Source: Ministeria vibrans ATCC 50519 (lineage: Eukaryota; Protista; Filasterea). Taken from it: DNA of 39,746 bases. Below, in pieces: positions 1 to 34,133 of the stretch; the stretch's first letter is position 1; the number at the start of each line of letters is the position of its first letter. The notes under the pieces are model-generated. The model was not told where the DNA came from. It worked only from the letters and a program-made list of their open reading frames with translations, and searched no databases. The stretch lies in the NCBI GenBank assembly GCA_943704425.1, contig CALSCP010001907.1:1-39746 (forward strand), written 5' to 3'. A program made the position numbers and the translations under genes.

Positions 1-3000
1 TCGATGGCCTGACACTCGGGGCCAGTGAATCCTGCGTCGCAAATGCACGCATAGCCGTCAATCATGTCAACACATGTTCCTGCATTCTGACACGGCGCGG
101 AGAGACACTCATCAATCTCTGACTCACACAGAGTGCCGGTGAATGCGGCAGAGCAAGTGCACACAAATGTCGGTGACAAAATGTCGGTGTAGTTGCCTGT
201 GCAAGTACCACCGTTAAGGCAGGGGAACGAGGCGCACGGACCCACAATAGTCTCGCATGTTGCACCAACGTAATCGCTGGTACACTGACAGATGAAATCA
301 GTGGCGGTCAGAGCAAGACAAGAGCCACCATTTTGGCAAGGGTTGGAATCACACGCACTAGGGGCCACATCAGTCTCAGTGGGCGCAACAGCAGCACTGG
401 TAAACACCACATCTGCCGACGTAGGAGCAGCAGCAGCACTGGTAAACACCACATCTGCCGAAGTAGGAGCAGCAGCAGCACTGGTAAACACCACATCTGC
501 CGAAGTAGGAGCAGCAGCAGCACTGGTAAACACCACATCTGCCGAAGTAGGAGCAGCAGCAGCACTGGTAAACACCACATCTGCCGAAGTAGGAGCAGCA
601 GCAGCACTGGTAAATGCAATATCTGCTGAAGTCGGTACAGCAGCAGCACTGGTAAACACCACATCTGCCGAAGTGGGCACAACAGCAGCACTGGTAAATG
701 CGATATCTGCTGAAGTGGCAGCAGCAGCACTGGTGAAAACAACGTCGGCCGAGGTGGGTGCAGCCGCACTAGTAAAGACAACATCGGCTGATGTCTGCGC
801 CGGCGCAGCACTGGTGAACACCACGTCGGCCGAGGTGGGCGCAGCAGCCGCACTAGTGAAAACAACATCGGCCGATGTCGGCACCGGGGCATCAGTGGTG
901 AGAAGCACGTCGGCCGAAGAGACCGCCGCAGTTGAAGTGGGCTCGGGCACAGCCTCGCTGACCGATGTAGTAGCCTGCGCAAAATCGCTGGTCACCGCCG
1001 CTTGTGTTGTAAATGCGACCACGTTAGACACCATTCGACCGGCACGGACGAGAAAACGCAAATCCTGCGTCTGTGTCGTGTCGTCGTCGACAAGGACGTG
1101 CGCAAACTCGTCGCTAGCGTGATACGAGGGGGTGCTCTCGTTGGGCACTTGGTCGCGCCACGACACCGACTCGGCAATCATCTCAATTTGCTCGCCGGCA
1201 ATGGCCGAGCGCAAAAGAATCTCATGCAAATGCGAAGCACTTGTGGCGCTTGTCGCAGCATGGTGCTCGTGAAAGCCCTTGAGCGTGTTGTAGAGCTGAG
1301 ACTCCATGAGAACAGCACCATCTGCAAACACATTGGCAAGCATGCTAGAGCGTGCGTCGGTAGCAATGGGTACTCCGCGCGTGATCATCATGGACGAGTC
1401 CACAGTGTCATAGGCAGCGACCACACAGGACGCCTGAGTGACACGAGCTGCGCGCATCATAGAGCGCACGCAATCGGGTTTCAGCAGCTCAACACCGCTC
1501 AGGAAGAGCAATTTGGTGGCCGGGAAGGCAGCAACGGCCGCACGCGCACCAAGGTTGTTTGCAGCGGCAGCGCTCAAATGTTGAGGCGAGCGGATGAGCG
1601 CACGTGTCTCTGAACGGCTCCACTCAAGTCCGATCGCGTTGACAATGCGACGCGTTACCTTGTCCGTGCTGGCGTTGTCAACAACCACCAGATTAACGCG
1701 TCCAGCAAACGTCTGTTGCTTGAGCGCACCAATGGCCGTCTCGAGGCGCAGCGGGTCATCACGATGCACAATGACAACCGTCACGGTTGCGGACACTTCA
1801 GCGTCGTTGTTGTCCGAGGCAGCAGCGGCCGTCAGCCGGCCGGCAGCCGTCAGTGCCAAGCGAGCATGAAAAGCAGGCCAAGCGACGGCGGCAGAGGAGG
1901 AGGTGGTGGCCGTGTCAAGGGCAGTCTCAGCCTCGAAAACGCGCGCCTGGCTGATTTCGGTGGTGAGAGCGGCCGAGACGCCCCAGGCGGACGCAAAATG
2001 GTCATAGTCGTCGCGATCAGAGATGACGACGGCGTCGGCCAGGTTGTGCACGCGACGAAACGTTTGCTCCTTAATGAGCAACTGAGTAATTTCCGAGCGT
2101 GTGAGCATCTCGAGTTCAACCTGAGGCGCGGGGCGCAGACGCACCGCATAACCAAACACACTGACAGCAATGTGAGGCAGTGGTGGCGCCTGATGCGCGG
2201 GGGCAGCAAGGAGGCCCTGGGCGCGAGCCTGCAGCGTGTAGTAGCCAAGACCCGATGTGAGCTCAAAGTGCACAATGTTGCACTGTCGGTGTACGTGCAT
2301 GGCACGCACCCAGAGGTAGGCGTCGTAGGAGCTTTGCAAACTTGTCGAAGGGAGGTCGAGGCGAACGGGACTGCTGGGGAGCCGCACCAACCGCGTGCCA
2401 GTGACACTGTAGGCATCGACTGCCTTTTGCCAACGGCGATCGTTGACGGCCGCCCCTGCGTACGCCACCGTAACGACCTTGCCTGCGTTCCAAGCGCTCA
2501 AGGCAAGCGTGTGGTACATATTGGCTCCCGCATGATTGGGGTCGAGATCACCAAAGTGCTCCACCACAAGACATACGCCGGCAGGCTGTTCGCTGTCGAC
2601 CATGTAGAGCTGTTTGTGAGCGGCTGTCGCGGCATCAGTGTTGTTCTCACGCTCGTGAGTGTCCCAAAAGTCGCCGTCGCGCACGGTACAATCGGGTGCC
2701 GATTGCCAGCCAAGGTCACAAAGGCAGATGGAGCTTCCAGGCATGGTGGGTACACCGTGCTCATTACAAAGCTGACGGGCGTCGAGACTGTTTGAAAACT
2801 GAAGTGTCGGCGCCGTGCCATCGTCCATCTCGGGAGCACCATGGCGGTGGTGAGTTTCCTGAGAAGCATAACGAAGAAACATTAATTTTAAAAAAATTAT
2901 TATTAAAAATATAAGAAAATAATATTATTATTATAGTCCTCGGTTTGATGTGTTTCAAGACATACCCGCACAGCAAGCCAAGCACACGAGGCCACTGTTC

Positions 3001-3438
3001 CGACAATGAGCAGAGCGATAAACGCAATATGACCGAGAGAGTAGATCGATGGAGTGCTCTCGCCATCCTACACAAGACATGTCGAGAAGAAGAAGACGAA
3101 TCAGGAGGAGCTCTCATGCGACAGCAGAGCAATGGAAAACACGCAAAAAAACATCAACACGCCGTCGTTGTTGGAGGGATGGGATTGTTGACAATTCAGC
3201 GGCTGCTGCAACGCAGCGCACTGAGGAACAAGCCGTCCATTGATTCCAATTCAAAAGATTTGGGTTTGACACAGCTTTTTTTTTTTTTTTTTTTTTGGTT
3301 AAATTCGTTCCATCAGCGCCACTCAAACAAACACGCCGACAGTAGCGAGGCAAGGAGGGTGACAGGAATGATTAAAGGCCGAGGGGATACTGGTAGCAAG
3401 CGAGCGAGCAAACGAGGGAGAGAGAGAGAGAAGGAGAT

Positions 3439-3472
<34 letters not shown>

Positions 3473-3964
3473 TCGCAACGGTCGAGAGTGCTTGAATGTT
3501 GAAAAAAAACAAAAACAAAAAAGAGGGGGCAGCAGATGGAGAATCGTGTATAGGGAGGGTTGTAAGAGAGTGGTATGGGGGCTGGGGCGAGAGCATTTGC
3601 AGCTGCGGCAACGTTGAAAGGGAAACGCGTGAATCATTGAAAATGTTGCGAGCGCTCTGCAGAATATTTGAAAAAAAAAAAACGGATAGAGAAAAAAAAA
3701 AGGGGCGGTTGCAAAGAGGCAGGGAGTTTGGTTAGGGGATGTGAAAGGGGGTGGGGAATGGGGATGTGCGGCGGCAAGGGCACGGAGAGTGGCGGGGGCG
3801 GCGAGAGCACTGCATGCTGTGCTTAAGCTGTTGGGGAAAAAAGACACCCTCCTGCAGGACACGGCGGCGCGCAGGGGCCCGTGCACGCTCCACCTGGTGC
3901 GATTACTGGCCCCGCATGAGGTTTCGTGACGGCGTACCTTTTTTAGATATTTTTCCTGAGCCAT
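1..3964 (-). CDS. Type II membrane protein: TM anchor, EGF, degenerate GT4-N-like and GT2-like domains, Thr/Ser/Ala-rich repeat, then Notch-like EGF repeats (3' end beyond window)
   Basis: Hand-spliced exons 3964-3938 (MAQEKYLKK|gtacgc), 3067-2966 (DGESTPSIYSLGHIAFIALLIVGTVASCAWLAVR|gtatgt) and 2858-1, all phase 0. The last exon is open to the window edge, which is probably why it is absent from the ORF track. It contains EGF CNEHG..CLCDLGWQSAPDC, GT4-like VCLVVEHFG..SYDAYLW..IVHFELTSGLGYY, GT2-like VTVVIVHRD..LKQQTF..VVVDNAST, and EGFs CDSNPCQNGGSC, CASFPCLNGGTC and EIDECLSAPCQNAGTCVDMIDGYACICDAGFTGPEC. Confidence 0.85.
380..900 (-). repeat. Coding tandem repeat, about 12 copies of a 39-42 bp unit encoding PTSADVVFTSAAAA (mucin-like stalk)
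   Basis: The unit gcagcagcactggtaaacaccacatctgccgaagtagga recurs on the + strand. The central copies are nearly identical and the copies toward 900 are more diverged. Confidence 0.95.
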
Positions 3965-4096
3965 CGTGAAGCGAAGCTCAGCCTGGATGTCTCGCCAACG
4001 GTTCACTGAGCGCAGTGCCAATGGAAAGAACAAAGTCCTGAACTGAAAAGGCGGCGTGGTTTGTGGTGGGCGAGAGATATTGAAGGGAGAGAGAGA

Positions 4097-4161
<65 letters not shown>

Positions 4162-6138: not shown

Positions 6139-8767
6139 ATGGTCCTCGCCGAGCGCTCCTCAACGTGGGTCGTTGGGTTTGTAGTGCCGGCGGCCATCTG
6201 GCTGATCATCATTGCGTATTGGATCGGGACAAGTCAGCCTAAGCTCGATGGACCTGCCAACAGCGCTACTCCGTCAGAAGCGGCCATTCTCGACGCTCCA
6301 CGCAAGGCTGCCGATGCCACAGCGTCACCTAAACCGCGTAGTGTCGAGCACACCGCTGCTGCGTCGAGTACGTTGTGTGTCTTGTTAAGTTTTCGCATTC
6401 ATCGTCCTCACCACTCCCGTGCGATGGGCCCGCTGGCCTTGTGCCTTGTCGCATTCGATCGTTTTCTTGCCGATCTCTGGGTTCACTCGGTGCGCATGCA
6501 CTTTTCAGCTCATATGGACTGTGTCGGAAGGACAATCTGTTTTTTTTTTTTTTTTCTTCTCTCTCTCCTTTTCCTTTTCTCTTCAGCAACGGCATAAAAT
6601 CGCATTCTCGCATGTGTGTAGGGAATCGTGGGGACAGCGTCACGTCGGTGAACATGGAGGAGGCTGCTGTGGCTCTGGCGGCCAAGAACCGCTGTACAGT
6701 GGACGAATTTCCAGAGGTGTATGCGACTCTGCGCGCCAACTCAAACATGGCCTTCTCTGAACAGTACCGATTCCCTATTAATATCAGCTTTTATTATATT
6801 ATTATTATAATTATAATATTTTATAATAATATTATTATCATCTCTCTTATTTGACATGCTGTGTATCTTATATTTTCTTTGTTGTAATCAAAGGTACCGA
6901 CAGTTGTCGAGTGCGGCGGAAGACTTTGATGCGATTGAGAGCAGTCGATCGTCGAACCGCGCGAAGAACCGCTACAACAACATTTTGCCCTACGACCACT
7001 CGCGTGTCGTGTTGGAAGTGGACGAAGACGTAAGAGATCAGAAAGGAGCGATATAGATGTCTCTTAGTAATGACACGGTTATTTTTATTATTATCACAAT
7101 CATTTTGAAGGAAATTGATGAGGACGTCACCGACTACATCAATGCGAATTTCATTGCTGGATTGCGGCAAGAACGAATGTATATTGCAACACAAGGGCCG
7201 ACGCCGCGGACGTTTCCGGACTTTTGGCGGATGATCTGGCAGTACGAGTGTCCTGTCGTGATTATGGTGACAAATCTTGTGGAGCGGGGCACGACCAAGT
7301 GTCATCAGTATTGGCCCAAAGGTGTGGGTGACTCGGCGGACCACGGGCCGCTGCGTGTAATGCTGTCGGGCGAGGAGGAGGCCAAGATGGGACTGGTGCA
7401 TCGCACGCTGTTGTTGACCAACATGGAGACGTCGCAGACTCGCGTTGTCCACCAACTACAGCTTGTTGGCTGGCCCGACCATGGCGTGCCTCGCTCGCCC
7501 GAGCTCCTTCTCAACATGATCCAACATGCGCACCAGCTGCGTGGCACATCGAAATCGCCCGTGGTCGTTCACTGTAGCGCGGGTGTGGGTCGCTCGGGGA
7601 CGTACATTGCGACGGACATTAACCTGCAGCGAATGCAAGAGACGCAGACGGTGGCTGTGTTCGACACGGTTGTTGAAATGCGCAAGGCTCGCATGTACAT
7701 GGTGCAGACCGAGGACCAGTACGTGCACATTCATGCGGTGCTGCTTGAGGCGCTTCGACAGGGCGCCACCAGTCTCTGCGACGTGTCCAAGTTTTCGGCG
7801 CACGTTGCCAAGCAGAGCAAGCTCGATCGACGCGGCTTTCGCAAAGAGTTTATGCTCCTCGCGCGCGACACGGGTGCCGTCGATTTTTACTCGTCGCAGC
7901 TGTCGATCAACTCGCGCAAAAATCGCTATGCGAATCAGTTGGCGCTCGAGCGATCGCGTGTTGTCTTGCGCGAGCTCAACAAGAAAAAGGTGCAGAAGTT
8001 GAGCGAGATGAGCGACGAAGCACGGGGCGAGCAGGCGAACAGAAGAAGGTTGATGGGCCAGGACTACATCAATGCCAACTACGTCGACGGCTGTGAACGA
8101 CGCCACCACTACATTGCGACGCAATGTCCGCTGCCCAACCGCACTGTCGAGGCCTTCTGGACCATGGTATGGCAGGAGAACTCGCAGGTGATTGTGGCGC
8201 TCATGGGTGACGAACTCAATGGGTACCTACCGCTCGTGGTGGGCGGTGAGCCACTGCATGTGGGCATGTTCACCATTACGCCTGTCGACGAGACACCTAT
8301 TTCCGACGCAGATTGTGTGCGTCGCACTATCACTGTTACACTGACTCAGCCGAGCGAGGACGACGAAGGGTCCGAGCCGACGACTGCGACAGCGACGACT
8401 GCAGAGAGCGAACAGCGCACCCTTGTCCACTACGAGTACCGTGGCTGGCCCGTCCAGGTGAGCATTCCGTCCGACGTCGTCTCTTTTGTGGCCCTTGCTC
8501 GACTTGTACAACCCCACGATGGTCCCAACGTGAGCGTAGGTCCTCTCATCGTCCATTGCAGGTAACGGTTCATTATTTTGAGTGCAGATTAATGTACATA
8601 ATTTTTGCATCGCGTGTATCTTTGTTTGCCAGTGGCGGTTCTGGTCGGACTGGAGTCTTTCTGGGACTTCTGTTTGAGTCGCATCGCGAGAGACTGCACA
8701 AAACATTCGATGTGTTCCGAACAACCCGGTAAGTGAAAAAACGCATGAGAAGCAACAATGAACGACC

Positions 8768-9914: not shown

Positions 9915-12900
9915 TTAGATCGCCCCATCGTCGTCCTCTTTCGCAGGCACCACGAGAGCACACTCGACAATGCGGCTAGTCGACGTGCCCACAAAGACAC
10001 GCGTATATGTGCCGGGCATAACATGAACGCTCGCCACACTACACCTGAAGTCGATGCGCTTCGAGTCATAAAAGTTGCTGGTGCTGAGCACGCTGCAGCC
10101 ACCGTCGTGCCCAAACACAAACGCCCCATCACCCACTGCTGATGACCGCACGTAAGTGTATGAGAGGACCGCCACCTCCCGCATTGTCCATGAGTTCATG
10201 TCGATCAGTAAAACACACGAATGATAGTCCAAAGGGCAATAATCGTCCTGCCTGCGTTCCACAGCGAGCACGTTCCCCGAGCCACAATCATGAAGCAGCA
10301 GGTCCACTTGACAGAAGTGCGCAAGTGCGTCGCAACAATCACCCGTCTGTACATCCCACACGCTGTACTGCGCGCGCATGCGAATGCGAGACTTGGACGA
10401 TTTGTTCACATCCGACACAACCAAAAGACGGCCAGCCTCAAGGTCAAGAAGGTCGCGCACACGTCCGTCGTGCTCTACAGTTCGCACATGCTCAAATGCA
10501 TCCTCGCGACACGCGATGATATGCACGAGTCGTTCACACGCCACGGCAATTTGCAGTCCGTCCAACAGCTTGGCCCGCGAGACTACCTGATTGAGAGCGT
10601 ACTCTGCAAGGCGATTGATTGCCATGCCGTACAGCTTAAGAGTGCCATCACTTGCAACCGTGACAAAGTGCTGCAAGGGCGCTGGCAACACAACAAGTTC
10701 GAGTAGCTCGCCGTGGAAAGACGTCTCTCTCTTCACCAGTTGCAGCGTGTCCGCGTCGAGCAAACACAGCGCAAAGTGAGCGTCTTGCGCTACTAGGAAT
10801 GTATTTTCGTCGTCGACCGCAATGAACCCCAGCACATTCATGTACAAAGTATCCTCGTCGGTACTCACACGGAGCAGCGTGTCCGTGTCGCAGACACAAT
10901 GGGCATTGTCGCGTACACAAAAGGTTTCCCAGGTATCAGACCACATTGCTATCATCACCGTCTTTTCATCTGGTGACATAAGCACATGCCCCACAGGACC
11001 ACTCAACACACGCACAAATGAGAGAATTACCCCCTGATGAACACTCACAAAAGCTACCGCGCCATTGACCAGGCCGCAGAGCGCATGCGCCGAGGTCAAA
11101 GCCACGCTAGATACGGTCCAAGGAAAGGTGACGGAAAAGATTCGCTCGCAACGTACCAGGTTGTATCCATGAAGATGACACCCCTCGGATGCTACAAGAA
11201 ACTCGGCGGCAGCCGCAAAGTATGTACATTTCGCTTCCAGTCCAAGCAGTTCCTCGTCGGCTGTCGCACCAACAAGGCGCAACGAACCGCTCTCTGCATT
11301 GTACACCAAAAAGGTTTCATCACCATGGAAACCAATCACACGCTCACAAACACCAGACGTGGGTACAACTCGCACCTCAGTCGCGGTGTCTCGACCAAGC
11401 CTATAGAGCAACACATTTTTCGTACACGACAGCGCTGCCAACTCGCCATTGGCGCTGATATGCAAAAACTCCAGATTGAAGAACATCTCAGGGACATGGG
11501 CAAGGCACACCGGAACGCTCACGTCAAAATAGACATCACGCGCAAGGTCCACGACAAGGAGACGTTCGCCAATACAAAAGAAGGCGCGTGAACCGTGCAT
11601 CGCAAAGCCACTGCACACTTCCATACCGAATGAATCTTCCGACTGGAAAACATTGGAAATCTTCCGTTCCACCGTGTACGTGCTCGTGTCAACCACAAAA
11701 GGATCATCTCGAGGGGGAAGGCACATCACGCGCTCGTTGTCTATAAATGCCGCGTGTTGAGGTGCATGGATATGCCTCGCAAACTCAACAGAGGTGATCA
11801 TGCGGTCGCGCGCGGCCGAATGCTGCAGCCAGGCACGTTGGGGCAGCAAACCCAAACCTGACTGGCGCAGCACCTCCTGTGCACCCTCAAGAAGGCGAAT
11901 GACATGGCCATGAGGCAGCGGAGATATTCGAGAGAGCAGCTGAAATGCAAGTACGGATGCCCCTTGGATCTTGCTATCTCTGGTAGCAGACACCCTTGAA
12001 AAACCCCCATTGTTGCCCATTGCGAAATCACGCACGGCCGCACGTAACTTCGCGACGCCTGGGTCGCCAAGTCGCTCGACAAGCGCTTCGCTCAGAGTCG
12101 TAAAAAGCATGTCACGGTAGCCCACAAGTGCACACGCGTGCAGTAGCCAGTTGAAATCAAAAATCAAGTCTTTGGCAAGCAGCAGTAAGCTTTTTGCGCC
12201 GATCATGTGCCGCGACACGACGTGTCGATAAAAGTAGAGTGCCAAGGAATCGAACAGTAAGGGTGTCAAGAAATTGCCGCCGGAATCGCACACCAACTTG
12301 GGCGCTTGCGGCCAAGAGATGCCGCACCACTTACGGAGCGCGTTAAACGTATCTTCGTGGTGCTGTTCAATTGCGTCGCAACCGTTAAAGTGCGCAAAAT
12401 CGGCCTGCAGCTCGTGCAGCGTGTAATATTTGTCGCTGTTAGACGTGAGCATTGACAGATCGACAAGAAGACCCGCAATGTGCGACGTGTCAAATACACA
12501 CAGCGTAATCTCGTGCTTTGTCGTGTGCGCCTCCCAGAGCACATGGAGCAGCTCGCATGGGATACGCTCGCCTTTTGGAAACACACACAGCTGGGCGTAG
12601 CAGTTGCGCACACACTCGTACAACTCGCGCTCGTCTGCGAGCGCCTCAAATGACACATCCAGCGCCGCACTGATCTGCACTAGAGAGTTGTCATGACGAT
12701 AGTGCTGTTCTTTGTACTTAAAGGCGTGGACCCATCGGGAACCAGCCTCGCGTAAACTGGCGACACGCGTGCCCCAATCCCGGCGCTTCGATACTGAGGC
12801 ACCCAGCATGGCAAGGGCCAGTGGCAAGTAGCCGCAGAGCTGCGCGAGTTCGATGGCGGCCTCCTCATCAGCCGATGCCATGGCCCCCTCCTCGTGCTTC

Positions 12901-14288
12901 GCACACTTGCGTAGCAGAGCCACAGCGTCGGGCAGCGCCAGCGACTCGACGCGCTCGACGACGGCGTCATCAGGCACCATTTGAGACTGTCGCGTGGTCA
13001 TGACAAACTGCACGCGAGAATGATTGTCAAAGCAGCGCATAAGGGGTGTCAGATGTTCCGCGTGCCACACGTTCTCCGCGACGACAAGTAGTCGCGCGCC
13101 GTTCTGAGTGACGGTTGTCGCCGCCTGGAGGTTGATCCAGTCGACGAGCCAGTCGACATTGTCTACAGGCGCATCACTGCCCCATTGTTTTTTACTTTCC
13201 CGGTCAAGTAGCAGCGCCAGGCGATATAAGATGCGCGCCATGTTGACGGATGCCTGATCGACGCCAAGCTGCACCCAGATTACACGGACAAAGGCACTGC
13301 GCACGCGCGCATCCTGCGCCACGGCCGTCGCGAGTACCGTCTTGCCTACTCCCCCCATCCCCACAAGCGCAGTTACACGCGGAGCGTTCTCGGCCGCAAC
13401 AGTGTCGATCAGCTTGGAAACTTGGTCGGTTATCATGTGGTGTGGCGGAAGCGAGGGCACCTCAAAATCGGTGATGATGACGGTAGCAGGCGCGCGTTCT
13501 TTGCGTTCTTCCAACTTTTCCACGCGCGCTGTGAGGGCTTCGACCTCGGCCTGCATCTCAGCCATCTGCTTCATTACGGCCTTCGCCTCGTCCTCGGCTG
13601 CCGTGACGACCGCCTGTGTGAGCCTATCTGTCGGTAGCGTCTCCAGGAACGAGCCAATCTTTGTGGCGACGGTGGCGCCCGCTGGAATTTCCTCGAGAAG
13701 CGCCTCCAGCGCGCGTATTCCCTCGGCAAACTTTGGTGGTGCAAGTTTCTGGTCGCTCGCGTGCGCCCATGTGTTGCGTGCTTTGCGGACGCGCTCAATG
13801 AGATTCGGTGGCAGTCGCGACCCCTTGTAGTATTGAAGGAAGGCACACAGACACGTCGCGTCGCTTTGAAAGGCGCTGTGGCACGATGGGGCGACCGGCA
13901 CCTTGACAAACACCTTGGCAAGCTCCCAGGGCGCGTGCGAGGGGTCGCACCACGCATTGAGATTGCTATTGCCAAAGTTGAGTTGCGCGACGTCCGTACG
14001 TCTGTGCAGCGAAATGCACATTTTCTCCCATCTAGCAAGGTGCTTACAGCGCGGATCCACCTCGCTCGGCCGCTTGCCAGCCTTGAGGTTGAGCTGCTTC
14101 AGGTGATAGCAGGGCTCATCGTCGCATGTCCTCGGCACAGGGGGCAGAGTGGCGAAGTGCTCTTGAAACATCTTTGTTGCCGTGTCATCGGCACAGCGAC
14201 GGATCACATCGAGAGAAACCTGGAGAGCATGAGCGAACGAGAGCCAGCGGGCAAAGTCTTGATCCTCGAGGCGGTCTGATAACTCCAT
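9915..14288 (-). CDS. APAF1-like STAND NTPase: N-terminal DUF4559/CXorf38-like HEPN domain, coiled coil, NB-ARC, helical domain and degenerate WD40-like beta-propellers; single exon, 1457 aa
   Basis: Uninterrupted ORF with ATG at 14288. Walker A GMGGVGKT (13361-13338), Walker B LLVVAENVW, FVMTTR, CGYLPLAL, YTLHELQADF (APAF1 has YLHDLQVDF) and IFDFNWL. The N-terminus RLEDQDFARW..HAL..NFGNSN...W....PWELAKVF..DATCL..VRKARNTWAH resembles CXorf38 and carries the HEPN R-x4-H motif. Confidence 0.9.
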   Translation of the reverse strand: MELSDRLEDQDFARWLSFAHALQVSLDVIRRCADDTATKMFQEHFATLPPVPRTCDDEPCYHLKQLNLKAGKRPSEVDPRCKHLARWEKMCISLHRRTDVAQLNFGNSNLNAWCDPSHAPWELAKVFVKVPVAPSCHSAFQSDATCLCAFLQYYKGSRLPPNLIERVRKARNTWAHASDQKLAPPKFAEGIRALEALLEEIPAGATVATKIGSFLETLPTDRLTQAVVTAAEDEAKAVMKQMAEMQAEVEALTARVEKLEERKERAPATVIITDFEVPSLPPHHMITDQVSKLIDTVAAENAPRVTALVGMGGVGKTVLATAVAQDARVRSAFVRVIWVQLGVDQASVNMARILYRLALLLDRESKKQWGSDAPVDNVDWLVDWINLQAATTVTQNGARLLVVAENVWHAEHLTPLMRCFDNHSRVQFVMTTRQSQMVPDDAVVERVESLALPDAVALLRKCAKHEEGAMASADEEAAIELAQLCGYLPLALAMLGASVSKRRDWGTRVASLREAGSRWVHAFKYKEQHYRHDNSLVQISAALDVSFEALADERELYECVRNCYAQLCVFPKGERIPCELLHVLWEAHTTKHEITLCVFDTSHIAGLLVDLSMLTSNSDKYYTLHELQADFAHFNGCDAIEQHHEDTFNALRKWCGISWPQAPKLVCDSGGNFLTPLLFDSLALYFYRHVVSRHMIGAKSLLLLAKDLIFDFNWLLHACALVGYRDMLFTTLSEALVERLGDPGVAKLRAAVRDFAMGNNGGFSRVSATRDSKIQGASVLAFQLLSRISPLPHGHVIRLLEGAQEVLRQSGLGLLPQRAWLQHSAARDRMITSVEFARHIHAPQHAAFIDNERVMCLPPRDDPFVVDTSTYTVERKISNVFQSEDSFGMEVCSGFAMHGSRAFFCIGERLLVVDLARDVYFDVSVPVCLAHVPEMFFNLEFLHISANGELAALSCTKNVLLYRLGRDTATEVRVVPTSGVCERVIGFHGDETFLVYNAESGSLRLVGATADEELLGLEAKCTYFAAAAEFLVASEGCHLHGYNLVRCERIFSVTFPWTVSSVALTSAHALCGLVNGAVAFVSVHQGVILSFVRVLSGPVGHVLMSPDEKTVMIAMWSDTWETFCVRDNAHCVCDTDTLLRVSTDEDTLYMNVLGFIAVDDENTFLVAQDAHFALCLLDADTLQLVKRETSFHGELLELVVLPAPLQHFVTVASDGTLKLYGMAINRLAEYALNQVVSRAKLLDGLQIAVACERLVHIIACREDAFEHVRTVEHDGRVRDLLDLEAGRLLVVSDVNKSSKSRIRMRAQYSVWDVQTGDCCDALAHFCQVDLLLHDCGSGNVLAVERRQDDYCPLDYHSCVLLIDMNSWTMREVAVLSYTYVRSSAVGDGAFVFGHDGGCSVLSTSNFYDSKRIDFRCSVASVHVMPGTYTRVFVGTSTSRIVECALVVPAKEDDDGAI

Positions 14289-14360
14289 TGATTTTTTTTT
14301 TACGATGAAAAAGATAAGAATGATCAAGTAAGATCAATTTTTTGTCGCCTTTTCGTAACC

Positions 14361-16778
14361 ATGTCAAAACTTACCACATCAAACGGATCACCTGTGATGG
14401 ACAACCGCAACTCGCTCACGGTTGGACCCAACGGCCCTGTGTACGCATTGCGCCCTCAACACCCGCACATTTCTTATTGTTTTCCGTCTTGTTTTTCCAG
14501 AGTGCTTCAGGATTTCCATCTCATCGACAAACTTGCCCACTTTGACCGCGAGCGTATCCCCGAGCGTGTGGTCCATGCCAAGGGCGCGGGAGCTCACGGC
14601 TACTTCGAGGTGACTCACGACGTGACTCACTGTAAGTGCGAATGAATGAAAACTGAGTGCGCTCTAACAACTCTCTCTCTCTTTCTCTCTCTCTCTTTCT
14701 CTCTCTCTCTCTGCATCTTCCTTAGTGTGCAAGGCCGACTTTCTGTCGCGTATTGGCAAACGAACACCCGTGCTGACGCGATTCAGCACTGTTGGCGGCG
14801 AGAAGGTGCGAGAAGGACGGACTTTGTGTTTCTCTGATCCTGTGCGTTGTTTTGTTTTGTAGGGCTCTGCCGACACCGCTCGCGATCCTCGCGGGTTTGC
14901 CGTCAAGTTCTACACTGCTGAGGGCAACTGGGATATGGTGGGCAACAACACGCCGGTGTTTTTCATTCGCGATCCGTCGCAGTTTCCGGATTTCATTCAC
15001 ACGCAGAAGCGCAATCCGCAAACCAACTGCCCCGACCCCAACATGTTTTGGGACTTTCTCTCGCTCACACCCGAGTCTGTCCACCAAGTGACCGTGCTGT
15101 TTTCGCCGCGCGGCACTCCCGATGGCTACCGCCACATGAATGGGTACGGCTACAAACGTCAATCTCTCGCCCTTCCCCTAATGCACCCTCTCGCAGCTAC
15201 GGATCGCACACCTTCAAGGTGGTCAACAAGGGAGGCGACGCTCACTGGGTCAAGTTTCACTTCAAGGTACCTCTTTGTATCTTCTATTTTGACATGTACT
15301 AATAATGTGGTTGTCTCTTTGACAGACGGACCAAGGAGTGAAGAACCTGACTCCGGCTGAGGCGGGTCGTCTTGCGGGAGAGAATCCCGACTACGCGACA
15401 AGCGACCTGTTCAAGGCAATTGATGGAGGCGACTTTCCTTCATGGTCACTCAAGATTCAGGTGATGACGGAGCAGGAGGCGCTGCACTACCGCATCAACC
15501 CCTTTGACGTGACCAAGGTGTGGCCGCACAAGGACTTTCCCCTGCACCCCGTCGGCCGCATGGTCCTCAACCGCAACCCCGACAACTACTTTGCCGAGGT
15601 CGAGCAGGCCGCCTTCTCTCCGTCCCACATGGTCCCCGGTAGCCCATCGAGAGCGATTGAGTTGCCCGATTCCTGACTCTCTTTTTGTCTCTCGATGTAT
15701 TTGTGTTTTGTCTCGTTGTTGTTAGGCATTGAGCCGTCGCCCGACAAGATGCTGCAAGGGCGCCTCTTTTCATACCCCGACACCCACCGCCATCGTCTGG
15801 GCGCTAACTACACGCAGGTAAGGAGATGTAGCAAGAGCGTGTGCACTGCATTTGAGCGAGTAAGTGACACCACACCGTCTACCCCTTCCTTTTTTTCTCT
15901 GTGTTTTAGATTCCCGTTAACTGCCCTTACGCTGCGCGCGCTCGCTCTCACCAGCGCGATGGGCTCATGGCTGTCGATGGCAACGGCGGATCTGCCCCAA
16001 ACTACTACCCCAACACCAGCACGGGCTCTATCACAGTCTCTCCGGGTGCCACCGACACTTCCCCCTTCCACGCCGAGGTACAATGTACATACACACACAC
16101 TCTCTCTCTCTATCACTTTGTTTCTTTCTCCCTTCTCTCTCTCTATCACTTTTTTCTTTCTCCCTTCTTTCTCTCTATCACTTTGTTTCTTTCTCCCTTC
16201 TTTCTCTCTATCACTTTGTTTCTTTCTCCCTTCTTTCTCTCTATCACTTTGTTTCTTTCTCCCTTCTCTCTCTCTATCACTTTGTTTCTCCTCTCTCTCT
16301 CTCTATCTCTCTCTCTATCACTTTATTTCTTTCTCCCTCCTTTCTCTCTCTCTCTCTCTATCACTTTATTTCTTTCTCCCTCCTTTCTCTCTCTCTCTCT
16401 CTATCACTTTATTTCTTTCTCTCTCTCTCTCTAGACACGTGACATCGCACTCACACTCACTTTCTTTAGGGCACCGTGGCGCACCATGTTCCGAGTGGGC
16501 CCCTTGTCGATGACTATGCTCAGGCAGGTGCGCTCTTCCGTCTCATGGCGGGTCCTGCCCAGGATGAGCTGGTCATGAACATTGCTGGTCATCTCGGAAA
16601 GGCACGCACGGACATCCAGAAACGCCAAATCGAGGTAAAACACATTCGTGTCACTCACTAGTCACTGACGCTCAATCTCATTGTCGTTCGCTGACTGGCC
16701 CTTCCTTAGATCTTCCGTAAGGCTGATCCTGACTACGGTCGTCGCATTGAGGCGCTTCTCTTTGGCGCAAAGCTCTAA
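14361..16778 (+). CDS. CAT: Monofunctional heme catalase, peroxisomal (PTS1 -AKL)
   Basis: [37 protein letters not shown]|[22 protein letters not shown]. The last exon reads [22 protein letters not shown]. About 10 exons. Confidence 0.97.
16100..16432 (+). repeat. Intronic minisatellite array of (CT)n-ATCACTTTGTTTC units in a catalase intron
   Basis: About 9 tandem units. The same unit recurs at about 5401, 16995, 20520-20890, 27180-27340, 33380-33430, 35475-35670, 35890-35930 and 38540-38665. Confidence 0.9.
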
Positions 16779-17152: not shown

Positions 17153-19542
17153 TGCCGGACCGCCGGCCGGCTCCTCCTTGGGGATCTCCGTCACGACTGC
17201 TTCTGCTGTGATCAGCAGCGACGCAACACCCGCTGCGTCAGTCAGTGCAGTGCGCACCACTAACACATTTAGAGAGAGATGTATATATTTTTCAGAGCCA
17301 TACGCAATAATTTATAGAAATTTTTATGCTGTTACCCTTGGTGGGGTCAATGATGCCCTCGGTGACCATGTTGACGTACTTGGACGTGGCTGCGTTGAAG
17401 CCCTCATCCTTGTTGCTCAGGCCCAGCACCTTGTCGACGACCACAGCGCCTTCCTCGCCGGCGTTAGTCGCAATGCGAGTGCCTACACACACATTCCATT
17501 CTCTATCACAAACACACATTTCTCTTTTGCCCATGCTTGACTCTTACAGGGAGCGCGCAGAGCCGACTTGATGACATTGATGCCCATTTGCTGGTCAAAG
17601 TTGATCGCCTTGAGACTCTCAAGTGCCGACAGACATCGCAGCAGAGCAGTGCCACCGCCGCAAACAATGCCCTCCTGGACAGCGGCACGCGTCGCGTTGA
17701 GCGCGTCCGTCACACGGTCCTTCTTCTCGCCCACCTCCACCTCAGACACCCCGCCAATCTTGAGCACCGCCACACCGCCCGACAGCTTGGCCAGACGCTC
17801 CTGGAGCTTCTCACGCTCATACTCGCTTGTCGTTTCCTCAATCTGCGAGCGGATCAGCTCCACACGCGACTCAATCGCGGAGAAATCGCCTGCACCCTCA
17901 AGCATAATCGTATCGTCCTTGGTGATCACCAGTTCCTTGATCCTATCCAGCGCGTGTAAGAAGGTGACACCACTAATTTCTCCCTCACACACACACACAC
18001 ACACATACACACACACACACACACACACGTACACGTACACACACGTACACGTACACATACACACACACTACATTTAACTTACGTTCCCAGTTGGTTCTCC
18101 TTGACATCCTCAACCTTGACACCAAGGGCATCGTCGCCCATGACCTCGCCGCCCGTCATGGCAGCCATGTCCTCGAGAGTGAGCTTGCGGTTGTCGCCAA
18201 AGCCGGGTGCCTTGACGGCGACGACCTGCAGCTGACCGCGCAGCTTGTTGAGCACAAGCGTGCTAAGCGCCTCGCTGTCGACGTCTTCGGCGACAATGAG
18301 CAGAGGACGACGCTGGGTGTGCGCAATCTCCACAGCGGGAAGGACCTGCTGCACCGTCGAGATCTTCTTCTGGCAGAAGAGCACAAGGGCATTCTGGAAT
18401 TCGACGCGCTGCGTCTTGGGGTTGGTGATAAAGAAGGGCGAGATGTAGCCGCGGTCGAACTTCATGCCTTCCGTGACCTCCAGCTCGTCGTACATGGTCT
18501 TGCCGTCCTTGACCGTGATGACGCCGTCCTTGCCAACCTTTTGCATCGCCGCCGAGATCAGGTTGCCAATCTCCTTGTCGCCATTGGCCGAGATGGTCGC
18601 CACCTGCATGATCTCTTCGCTCGTCGTGACTGGGCGCGACATCTCCTTGAGCGACTCGACACACTTGTCAACAGCCAGCTGGATGCCGCGGCGCAGGTCG
18701 AGCGGGTTGAGACCGGCCGTGACGTGCTTGAAGCCCTCCTTGGCAATGGCACGCGCCAGGACGGTGGCCGTCGTCGTGCCGTCACCAGCCAGATCGTTCG
18801 TCTTGCTGGCCACATCCTGCACCAGTCGTGCTCCAATGTTCTCGTACTTGTCTGCAAGCTCAATGGCTGACAAACGAGAGAAAAGGCGAAAAGAAAGAAA
18901 GGTGATCAAAAGAATAAAATAATATGAGACGCTATAGAAAATGAGTCTTACACTTGGCAACAGTCACACCGTCCTTGGTGATCTTGGGGCTACCCCAGCT
19001 TTGCTCGATCACAACGTTGCGGCCCTGTCGTAATGAGACAAGAGGAAAGAAAGAGAGAGAGAAAAAAAAAAGCCATGAGTCGTTTTTGCCATCACTTGAC
19101 GATCAGGAAGAGAGGAAAGAGCAAGAAAGAGAGAAGGGGGAGGAGGGGGAGGGATGCAATGGGGCCAGGGGCTGTTGATCAGTGTCCCGCTGGGGCGTGT
19201 GTGTGGCTGGAGAGCACAGAACGACGAAAGGAGTGCAGAGAAAACGCCGGAAACAGGTTTGAGGGAGAGAGAGACAGAGCGAGAGAGAGAGAGAGAAAGG
19301 AGAAAGAACGACAAGGGAAAAACGAGTGGGGGCGGGGCGGGCCATACCTTGGGGCCAAGAGTGACGGCGACAGCATCAGCAAGGCGGTCGACGCCGGCAA
19401 GCATCGCCTTGCGCGCGTCGAAGCCAAAGCGAATGTCTTTCGCGTACGATCGGCGAGGCTGGACGGCCACAGCGGCCACGGCGCCAGATCGAACAACAGA
19501 CGGAACTGCACGAGCAGGAGTGGAAAGAATAACACGCTGCAT
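16947..19542 (-). CDS. HSPD1: Mitochondrial chaperonin HSP60 (GroEL family)
   Basis: Presequence [63 protein letters not shown] and a (GGM)n tail. A predicted terminal micro-exon ATG TAA lies at 16952-16947. Confidence 0.97.
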
Positions 19543-22794: not shown

Positions 22795-23976
22795 TTAACA
22801 GAACTTGGTTCTTCGACGGAGCACGTGCAAGAGAAGAACCAAGGCACAGCCAGAAGAGACAAGAAAGAGTAGATTGAGAGAGGGTTGTGACAGCGATAGG
22901 GATTCGTGATCAAGTGGGGCACTGGCGGTGGTGGTGTCTTCCTCTGAGCGAGACACGGGTGGTGAAGAGACTGGTGGAGGGGGTGGAGGGGGTGGAGGGT
23001 GGGCGGCGATGCCCACGTCGGCCACCACAGTTGTCTCGCCCTCTTTACCACTGTACGTCATTTTACTGAGGAGCTCCTTCACTTGCGCCATCTTCAAGTG
23101 GCCATACATTTTGTGGACGCCCAACGGAAAGGGATGTGGAAATACCTCGACGGAGAAGGAAAGGGCGACGTCACGCGTTGCCAGCTTGGTAGTGGGATCG
23201 TCGAGAACACACGTGGCAAGGTAGCCGTCCTCGGGTCCCGGATTGGCTCGGCGTGGCAATGCACGTTGCACAGCGCGTGCAATGACACCGCCGGGCGCAA
23301 CACACCTTTTCATCGTGCTGATGGATCGAATGGAGAAGCCACCGTTGCCGACGATGCCGCCGTCCGAGGAACGTGTCGTCTTGGGGTTCCCACCCATGTC
23401 CCATGGGGCGCCCAAATAGTCATATTGCATGTACTCATCGATGCCGGGGCGGAGCAACAGGCAGTCGGTGTGCAGAAAGAGAATGTGATCGCGCACCACC
23501 GGGACCATGGCGTCCCAGACGAGAGGCGACATGAAGAAATAGTTCATCCAGATGGCGGGTGCAGTGGGGTTTGACGGGTCAAAGTGAGTGCCTTCGAATG
23601 GCACCTCTTCTTGTGTGGTAAACACAATGTTTGGAACGTCTGCAAAAATGTCTCTCATTTGCTCCAAATTGCTTTGTGTGCAAAATATCTGGACGGACCA
23701 GGTGAACTGGGTCTTGAGCTGGATGAAGTACATGACATTGTAGACGACATACTTGGCGAGCGCAACGGCGTCGGGCAGCGTGCGAGGCTCAATCAGCACA
23801 ATCGCATAGTCGCACTGGTCGCCACGCGCACACACCACAGGCGTGTGCTTGTACAGCTCGGCCTCGGTGGACTTGAGGTGCGCATGGTACATCTTGCTGA
23901 CTGCCTCGTTGATGTACAGCCCCCGCACAGCCAGCAGCTGCAGCAGCACGAGCACACCGGCAACGCACAGGCGCAT
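22795..23976 (-). CDS. DUF5672-family putative glycosyltransferase with signal peptide, Pro-rich linker and C-terminal TM; single exon
   Basis: AIVLIEPR, ILFLHTDCLLL, YDYLGAPW, VGNGGFSIRS, EDGYL, FSVE and PLGVHK are the characteristic DUF5672 motifs. Both the N-terminus and the C-terminus (LLFLVSSGCALVLLLHVLRRR) are hydrophobic. Confidence 0.8.
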   Translation of the reverse strand: MRLCVAGVLVLLQLLAVRGLYINEAVSKMYHAHLKSTEAELYKHTPVVCARGDQCDYAIVLIEPRTLPDAVALAKYVVYNVMYFIQLKTQFTWSVQIFCTQSNLEQMRDIFADVPNIVFTTQEEVPFEGTHFDPSNPTAPAIWMNYFFMSPLVWDAMVPVVRDHILFLHTDCLLLRPGIDEYMQYDYLGAPWDMGGNPKTTRSSDGGIVGNGGFSIRSISTMKRCVAPGGVIARAVQRALPRRANPGPEDGYLATCVLDDPTTKLATRDVALSFSVEVFPHPFPLGVHKMYGHLKMAQVKELLSKMTYSGKEGETTVVADVGIAAHPPPPPPPPPVSSPPVSRSEEDTTTASAPLDHESLSLSQPSLNLLFLVSSGCALVLLLHVLRRRTKFC

Positions 23977-31923: not shown

Positions 31924-33684
<1,761 letters not shown>

Positions 33685-34133
33685 TAAGAAAGGATTGTAC
33701 AGATACAATGAGTTGTACATGTGTATACAATGGCTCTTTTGGTCGATGATCGGGCAGATTATTTCGTCCTTAATGACTGACAGAGCATCTGAGTGCGATG
33801 TATATATAATTATATATATATTTGGGTGGAAGCTGATCAACGAACGATCGAGATTCTACATCTAATATTTATCGCATCGCATCAGCCGAAGTGTTCTGTC
33901 CCTTCTCGACGCGCATGTAGCTTAGAAGGTGGTTCTCTATTTTCCTTAGTGACACTGTTGCTTTTGAATTAAGAGTACAGACAACGAACTTGGACGTTTA
34001 CTTTTTCAACCACACAATACACCTAAGTCACATTTGACATTTATCATAATCACATTAATTCCCTTTGTCTGTGTGTGGCTCAACTTGTGTGTTTCTGTCA
34101 CTGCAAAGCTAGAGCACACACGGCACTCCAACA

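Follow-up and report, generated by a model that had tools for sequence, protein, structure and literature searches.

A candidate mosaic surface glycoprotein of Ministeria vibrans with a degenerate GT4-GT2 glycosyltransferase head, an EGF array and a PPxY tail

Contig C1907 (CALSCP010001907.1) of the filasterean Ministeria vibrans ATCC 50519 carries at its start, on the minus strand, the first exons of what is probably a genuine eukaryotic gene with introns, whose product would be a large mosaic glycoprotein of the cell surface. The window analyzed here is this entire contig of 39,746 nucleotides, which belongs to an assembly (GCA_943704425.1) of 29.7 Mb in 2,860 contigs. The explanation that best accounts for the whole gene, and that we likewise hold to be probable, is a surface protein with a folded but degenerate glycosyltransferase head, consisting of the N-terminal half of a GT4 domain (GT4N) followed by a GT2 domain, an EGF array, a transmembrane (TM) helix and a PPxY-bearing cytoplasmic tail. 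Exons were searched and folded individually; the joined exon model was used in no search or fold.

Gene model and continuation beyond the contig

The body of the gene is a frame that reads on the minus strand from 2858 down to 2 and comprises 952 codons without a stop. It forms exon 3 (positions 1 to 2858), begins at the acceptor TCAG/GAA and runs open past the end of the contig. An earlier note on this DNA had pointed out that this frame is open to the window edge and is missing from the list of open reading frames (ORFs); the ORF tool drops frames that exceed their source. On reading of the DNA, exon 1 lies at 3938 to 3964 on the same strand (27 nt, the ATG at 3964 plus eight codons, MAQEKYLKK, with the donor AAG/GTACGC) and exon 2 at 2966 to 3067 (102 nt, from AG/GAT to CGG/GTATGT). 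They are separated by intron 1 (3068 to 3937, GT...AG), and exon 2 is separated from exon 3 by the AT-rich intron 2 (2859 to 2965, GTATGT...TCAG). The two junctions that had been proposed earlier, 3938/3067 and 2966/2858, are thus canonical GT/AG sites, and the three exons are mutually in frame (27 nt, 102 nt, then from 2858). Exon 2 encodes an N-terminal hydrophobic segment, DGESTPSIYSLGHIAFIALLIVGTVASCAWLAVR, with a hydrophobic stretch of 26 residues in translation, which could act as a signal anchor or as a signal peptide. Intron 1 also holds a (GA)n microsatellite at 3414 to 3469 and a run of ∼23 A at about 3275 to 3297, and further (GA)n and (GT)n microsatellites are found directly upstream of the start codon (window 4087 to 4151).

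The order of modules along the gene, EGF, GT4 N-terminal half, GT2, tandem repeats and EGFs, was recovered with Pfam, a family hidden Markov model (HMM), fold matches and Tandem Repeats Finder, in agreement with the order given in the earlier note. No paralogs of the predicted gene were found in the same genome.

At its end, the contig overlaps two allelic contigs of 182 bp (C2740 and C1073) by exactly 109 bp, and the EGF array extends into them. These two contigs differ by three single-nucleotide polymorphisms (SNPs), all of which are synonymous. A real gene is regarded as the best explanation because of these synonymous-only allelic SNPs, the open frame and the canonical, in-frame splice sites. 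Past C2740 and C1073 lies a tangle of contigs of 118-276 bp that encode a ∼77-residue unit of two EGFs cycling on itself, a pattern that points to a collapsed tandem array. A variant contig of this tangle (L004) shares an exact overlap of 109 bp with the beginning of C1597, a contig of 18 kb. When three probes spanning the whole unit were used at an identity of at least 93%, only contigs of the tangle, C1907 and C1597 were recovered, and the remaining candidates were 118-127 bp long. C1907 and C1597 are therefore the only long contigs that touch the tangle, which leaves one entry and one exit. It is very probable that the gene continues through the collapsed EGF-pair array into C1597.

The frame on C1597 adds 486 codons, which encode three EGFs, a non-EGF module of ∼150 residues, five further EGFs (Pfam EGF 1.8e-33; EGF_CA 2.3e-9), a predicted TM helix and the start of a tail. 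After a GTAAG donor, two short terminal exons (C1597 1527-1676 and 1770-1906) complete a proline-rich cytoplasmic tail and end in a stop codon. The tail contains three PPxY motifs, which are WW-domain-binding motifs, one of them spanning a predicted junction. The orphan module between the two EGF blocks (C1597 about 289-720) ends in a GPS-like CGCTSLT (C-x-C-x-x-L-T). For this module, no match was obtained in Pfam, in BLASTP against a chytrid relative or in a word search, and a sub-threshold ZU5 lead was the only indication of its nature.

The connection between C1907 and C1597 is drawn from overlaps in the assembly graph that pass through a repeat, and a strict exact-overlap walk over the fetched contigs did not close. 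Moreover, the variants of the EGF unit are 93-100% identical, hence several copies exist. These observations favor the alternative that C1907 and C1597 carry two genes that share the EGF-pair repeat, in which case the gene in the window would encode a type II protein with distal EGFs, as the earlier note proposed, whose true end is unassembled. This alternative is nevertheless improbable, as the whole-unit probes defined a single entry and a single exit among the small contigs, the frame and the type of EGF are continuous into C1597, and related proteins also end in a C-terminal TM helix.

The degenerate glycosyltransferase head

To place the glycosyltransferase region, a family HMM of 667 nodes from 96 full-type relatives was used. 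The N-terminal Rossmann half-domain of a GT4 (GT-B) enzyme is located at 1959 to 2597 on the minus strand (residues about 88-300) and corresponds to nodes 8-136 (E 1.8e-26). In related proteins, the regions aligned to this half-domain carry the Pfam domains PF13439/PF13579 (Glyco_transf_4). The isolated N-terminal half of the Ministeria protein gave no match in Pfam, so the GT4 assignment rests on the family HMM, the Pfam matches of the relatives and the predicted fold. AlphaFold2 (AF2) modeling of the first EGF-like module plus this domain resulted in a predicted local distance difference test score (pLDDT) of 79, with blocks above 90. When the N-domain model was compared with known structures using Foldseek, GT-B enzymes were found at the top with E about 1e-4, interspersed with Rossmann folds of a generic kind. 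They comprised LmbT, GlgM, a GT4 mannosyltransferase, sucrose-phosphate synthase and plant UGTs.

The half-domain is followed by a helical linker (1797 to 1958, minus strand; residues about 301-354) that is equivalent to the post-GT4 segment of the family (nodes 366-405). The nodes in between, 137-365, which represent the C-terminal, donor-binding Rossmann domain of GT4, were not matched; in place of these 229 nodes the protein has ∼75 residues. Likewise, the spacing between GT4N and GT2 is 260 residues, while among 105 relatives it is 360-480 in 96 and 200-280 in the nine "short" ones. From the unmatched nodes and the shortened spacing it follows that the donor-binding C-domain is gone from the predicted protein.

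The GT2 domain, which has a GT-A fold, is located at 1134 to 1796 on the minus strand (residues about 355-575) and appears catalytically degenerate. PF00535 reached 21.4 bits when the entire exon-3 product was scanned and 24.0 bits on the domain alone, with a cut-off of 23.3, and the family HMM matched the region over nodes 366-639 with an E-value of 1.4e-39. AF2 modeling of the glycosyltransferase region from an alignment of 91 sequences gave a pLDDT of 74.9 and a predicted TM-score (pTM) of 0.75. Both the Rossmann-like and the GT-A blocks reached a pLDDT above 90, the latter over residues 330-545. With the GT2 model, Foldseek identified K4CP, heparosan synthase, SpsA, TarP and RmlT (E 2.9e-12 to about 5e-9), with target-normalized TM-scores of up to 0.81 for single-domain targets.

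Both catalytic motifs of this domain are substituted. The DxD position (1491 to 1499, minus strand) reads S454-G455-V456 within LLFLSGVE (1511-1488); in 150 of 154 homologs, the two outer positions of this triplet are both occupied by Asp. The catalytic E-D position (1227 to 1232, minus strand) reads H543-L544 within SHLHE (about 1235-1221), and the catalytic Asp of this motif is conserved in 97% of the aligned homologs. R368, D395, R434 and R569 are likewise substituted in the Ministeria protein, and the three Arg are near-invariant in the homologs. In the 21 eukaryotic relatives that were checked, the Asp motif was always retained (as N-D-D in P0091). Apart from the Ministeria protein, DxD is missing only in a small clade (P0074, P0113 and P0141), which keeps E-D; this clade is well supported and represents a second, independent degenerate lineage of the GT4-GT2 family.

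The earlier note had read the DxD and E-D positions in the same way, had regarded the GT4 C-terminal Rossmann domain as deleted and had described the glycosyltransferase domains as apparently dead. All of these statements are supported here, and a non-catalytic module remains the best reading of the head. From the loss of both GT2 motifs and of the GT4 C-domain, we infer that the head no longer transfers sugars by a canonical GT2 or GT4 mechanism.

Relatives, origin and standing of the head

To identify relatives, the 600-residue glycosyltransferase region was searched with phmmer against 1.84 billion representative sequences (E ≤ 1e-3). This yielded 445 matches, the best with an E-value of 2e-22, which fell into two blocks (residues 30-160 and 260-515 of the region). 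In the matched proteins these blocks correspond to the Pfam domains Glyco_transf_4 (the GT4 N-domain) and Glycos_transf_2. A word-index search of the region at the length range of the whole product gave nothing, and a sequence search of the PDB with the single query sequence was also negative; matches in the PDB came with the family profile only. This profile matched full-length GT4 structures, namely MshA (3c48, profile 25-404), GlgA and PimA, and also GT2 structures of the SpsA type, from which it follows that the parent protein was a genuine GT4-GT2 fusion. Since many relatives are bacterial as well, the earlier description of the head as a bacterial-type GT4-GT2 fusion stands.

The named relatives form two groups. 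The first consists of bacterial glycosyltransferases, for example of Bdellovibrionota, and the second of large "hypothetical proteins" of the chytrids Dinochytrium, Chytriomyces, Entophlyctis and Cladochytrium and of Amphiamblys, Selenidium and Clastostelium. The chytrid-type proteins have a common layout of an N-terminal hydrophobic segment, EGF_Teneurin, GT4, GT2, TIG, REJ, GPS and a C-terminal TM helix, which was also found in two further members on eukaryotic metagenome contigs. Proteins of this family (P0002, P0004, P0007, P0024 and P0085, and ENA contig L018) are 1,900-2,700 residues long and occur in chytrids, Amphiamblys and some transcriptomes. No paper describing an EGF-GT4-GT2-TIG-REJ-GPS-TM family was found in the literature, and its members are uncharacterized.

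The Ministeria protein shares several features with these eukaryotic proteins (Dinochytrium kinnereticum KAJ3213389.1, Chytriomyces confervae TPX78479.1, Cladochytrium replicatum KAI8809738.1 and Amphiamblys OIR57414.1): a hydrophobic N-terminus, an EGF-like module 20-25 residues before GT4N, the GT2 domain and, with the probable continuation on C1597, a large ectodomain and a C-terminal TM helix. The identity is ∼27-31% in both glycosyltransferase blocks. Its EGF-like module and GT4N are collinear with the Dinochytrium protein P0002 (31% identity over 188 residues), and it has in common with six relatives a C-x-C-(D)-L-G-(W/Y) motif that precedes GT4N by 20-25 residues. The chytrid-type proteins, however, keep the GT4 C-domain, the Asp triplet, the E-D motif and a TIG/REJ/GPS stalk, whereas the Ministeria protein has 14-residue repeats, an EGF array, the orphan module and the PPxY tail. 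With the bacterial GT4-GT2 fusions (annotated for cell wall or O-antigen biosynthesis, e.g., Bdellovibrionota MBL7714770.1) the two-domain core is shared, and a bacterial-type subtype without the GT4 C-domain (P0001, P0014, P0094 and others) has a GT4N-GT2 spacing of 200-280 residues, as in the Ministeria protein. The bacterial enzymes, in contrast, are soluble or cytoplasmic, have intact motifs and lack EGFs, repeats and TM helices. Compared to the GT2 enzymes SpsA, TarP and K4CP the GT-A fold is the same, but these enzymes depend on a metal bound by DxD and on Asp or Glu as the base, in the positions where S-G-V and H-L are found here.

For phylogenetic analysis, a two-domain alignment was built domain by domain; trees were unrooted, and approximately unbiased (AU) tests were performed on a subset of 40 rows. 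In the two-domain trees the known eukaryotic proteins formed a clade (Shimodaira-Hasegawa-like approximate likelihood ratio test, SH-aLRT, 96), with an EGF-bearing clade inside it (SH-aLRT 100). The end branch of the Ministeria protein was 3.4-4.5 compared to a median of 0.64-0.72, i.e., five to six times the family median, and the protein was unplaced in free trees. When it was constrained into the EGF-bearing clade, the resulting tree was 15.6 log-likelihood units (lnL) better than the tree from the free search (p-AU 0.78). Constraining it with the short bacterial-type proteins that lack the C-domain resulted in a tree that was 38 lnL worse (p-AU 0.029). In a FastTree of GT2 alone, the protein fell, weakly supported, within the enzymes of Bdellovibrionota, a result that was discarded as a long-branch placement in view of the two-domain trees and the AU tests.

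The protein is thus seen as a fast-evolving member of the eukaryotic EGF-GT4-GT2 family, and its inclusion in the EGF-bearing clade is favored but not proven. Because grouping with the short subtype is disfavored, we conclude that the GT4 C-domain was apparently lost independently in this protein and not inherited from that subtype. Two statements of the earlier note are not supported. It knew of no described protein with such an architecture, but EGF-GT4-GT2 heads are present on surface proteins of chytrids and other eukaryotes. It also proposed that the glycosyltransferase was shuffled with EGF arrays, but the fusion of EGF and glycosyltransferase domains did not arise in this lineage; it is shared with the relatives, and an AU test favors a position inside their clade. 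An old transfer into eukaryotes would fit the bacterial-type core, but as the trees are unrooted, no donor or date is claimed.

In addition to the repeat-borne join between the contigs, several results weigh against a real gene with a retained, non-catalytic head. No identical or near-identical protein was found among the 1.84 billion representatives with phmmer or in the word index, and neither REJ nor GPS, which are present in the relatives, was detected by Pfam in exon 3 or on C1597. The great length of the branch could reflect decay instead of a new function. Of the 58 family columns that are at least 85% conserved, the protein keeps 25, against a median of 53 and a minimum of 33 among the homologs. 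This loss is not enriched in polar or charged columns (7 of 20 kept compared to 18 of 38, p = 0.41), so the catalytic losses may belong to general rapid divergence or drift and not to a targeted change.

The long branch and the loss of conserved columns, together with the fact that no transcript-derived protein was found in public collections, would fit a decaying relic, in which the gene or its head is unexpressed or non-functional. We consider this decidedly improbable, since the frame of 952 codons has no stop, the canonical splice sites are intact, only synonymous allelic differences occur in the sampled stretch, both glycosyltransferase modules were folded confidently by AF2, and the TM helix and tail are intact downstream. 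As for the absence from public protein sets, it is attributed to the gene spanning a collapsed repeat and a contig end. That the GT2 domain is still an enzyme, which by a non-canonical, metal-independent mechanism or with Glu457 after the lost triplet would glycosylate its own repeats or EGFs, or the wall or matrix, is very improbable: its fold is predicted with confidence, the first nucleotide-contacting Asp D394 (VVVDNASTD), N435, N509, E531 and E546 are kept and there are GT-A families that do without a DxD motif, but the Asp triplet, the catalytic Asp and R434, R368 and R569 are all substituted, this combination of losses occurs in none of the 154 homologs and the partner GT4 domain has no donor-binding half.

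Ectodomain, membrane anchoring and proposed function

Upstream of the head, an EGF-like module with four Cys is present at 2688 to 2768 on the minus strand (residues 31-57, CNEHG...CLCDLGWQSAPDC). It aligns with the Pfam EGF_Teneurin domain of the Dinochytrium protein P0002 and was not detected by Pfam in the Ministeria protein itself. What the earlier note called the first EGF can therefore be kept as an EGF-like module on the strength of this alignment, but it has only four Cys and is silent in Pfam.

Downstream of the head, 12 tandem copies of a 42-nt unit encoding the Ala/Ser/Thr/Val-rich 14-residue sequence PTSADVVFTSAAAA are found at 378 to 875 on the minus strand. Tandem Repeats Finder gave a period of 42, 12.0 copies and 83% matches, close to the approximately 12 repeats counted earlier. 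The repeats consist of 28.9% Ser plus Thr, 6.6% Pro, 33.7% Ala and 22.9% Val, Phe and Ile. With this composition they are only loosely mucin-like, and their earlier description as a mucin stalk is weakly supported.

The repeats are followed by three EGF modules of the hEGF type at 1 to 356 on the minus strand (exon 3 residues about 830-950; Pfam EGF E 7e-17), in line with the "at least three" EGFs noted before; the array goes on past the contig into C2740 and C1073. Each of these three modules has one O-glucose and one O-fucose consensus site, and of the 12 EGF modules counted across the gene, 11 carry the two sites together. Members of the O-FucT (PF10250) and GT90/POGLUT-like (PF05686) families are encoded in the genome (C498:24920-26039, C372:30464-32575, C2228:23142-23783 and C2085:5621-7410), which fits the presence of consensus sites in nearly every EGF of the gene. 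Based on these sites and genes, the EGFs may be O-glycosylated. The hEGF/cbEGF array with O-fucose and O-glucose sites, which gave Pfam matches to EGF, hEGF and EGF_CA, is a feature shared with Notch receptors. The LNR/NOD and RAM/ANK regions of Notch, however, gave no Pfam match in any exon, and the tail of the Ministeria protein is a short proline-rich segment with PPxY motifs.

The earlier proposal of a type II topology with membrane-distal EGFs is probably wrong, as the gene most likely ends on C1597 in a C-terminal TM helix and the PPxY tail. Anchoring by this C-terminal helix is probable. The head would be the membrane-distal tip of the protein if the N-terminal segment is cleaved, or one foot of a loop between two TM segments if it is retained.

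In the proposed mechanism, the glycosyltransferase head would be kept as a folded, non-catalytic module that binds a ligand, either a glycan or a protein, or that has a structural role. The 14-residue repeats and the EGF rod would serve as spacers that hold the head off the membrane, and the PPxY tail would couple the receptor to WW-domain proteins, such as ligases of the Nedd4 type or adaptors of the YAP type, with a role in turnover or signaling. With respect to the ligand, the dead head may bind glycans; roles in adhesion, prey capture or theca building, as raised in the earlier note, are conjectural. Several glycosyltransferase pseudoenzymes, namely Cosmc (C1GALT1C1), the streptococcal GtfB, which is the partner of GtfA, and the chondroitin polymerizing factor, have kept their fold after loss of catalysis and are reused for binding, chaperoning or scaffolding. 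To our knowledge, none of these pseudoenzymes is homologous to the Ministeria protein or forms the head of a transmembrane receptor with an EGF array, and the resemblance is one of functional analogy.

A more far-reaching scenario is put forward tentatively, although on balance it is doubtful. Here, in a relative of animals, the enzyme head of a family built in the style of polycystins and adhesion G-protein-coupled receptors would have become a lectin-like ligand sensor on a Notch-type EGF rod, wired by PPxY motifs to the WW-domain machinery of the Nedd4 or YAP/Hippo type, and hence a pre-metazoan example of a pseudoenzyme serving as a receptor ectodomain. Should the main reading of a surface receptor with a non-catalytic head hold, the protein would provide a testable and dated transition from enzyme to pseudoenzyme, with intact relatives as controls, in a lineage that informs reconstructions of how animal adhesion and signaling arose. 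The analysis also exposes an apparently undescribed eukaryotic family with an extracellular GT4-GT2 head on a REJ/GPS stalk, and the gene illustrates what assemblies of this kind can hide.

Elsewhere in the window, a minus-strand ORF of 1,470 residues at 9915-14327 encodes DUF4559 and an NB-ARC STAND NTPase (E 1.1e-23). Further neighboring genes at 7057-8565 (plus strand), 22795-23976 (minus strand), 15695-16513 (plus strand) and 18079-18960 (minus strand) encode a classical protein-tyrosine phosphatase (E 7e-105) and a protein with DUF5672, while a catalase and a CCT chaperonin are represented by exon-sized fragments. The GC content is 0.34 at window 32001-34000, compared to about 0.50 elsewhere.

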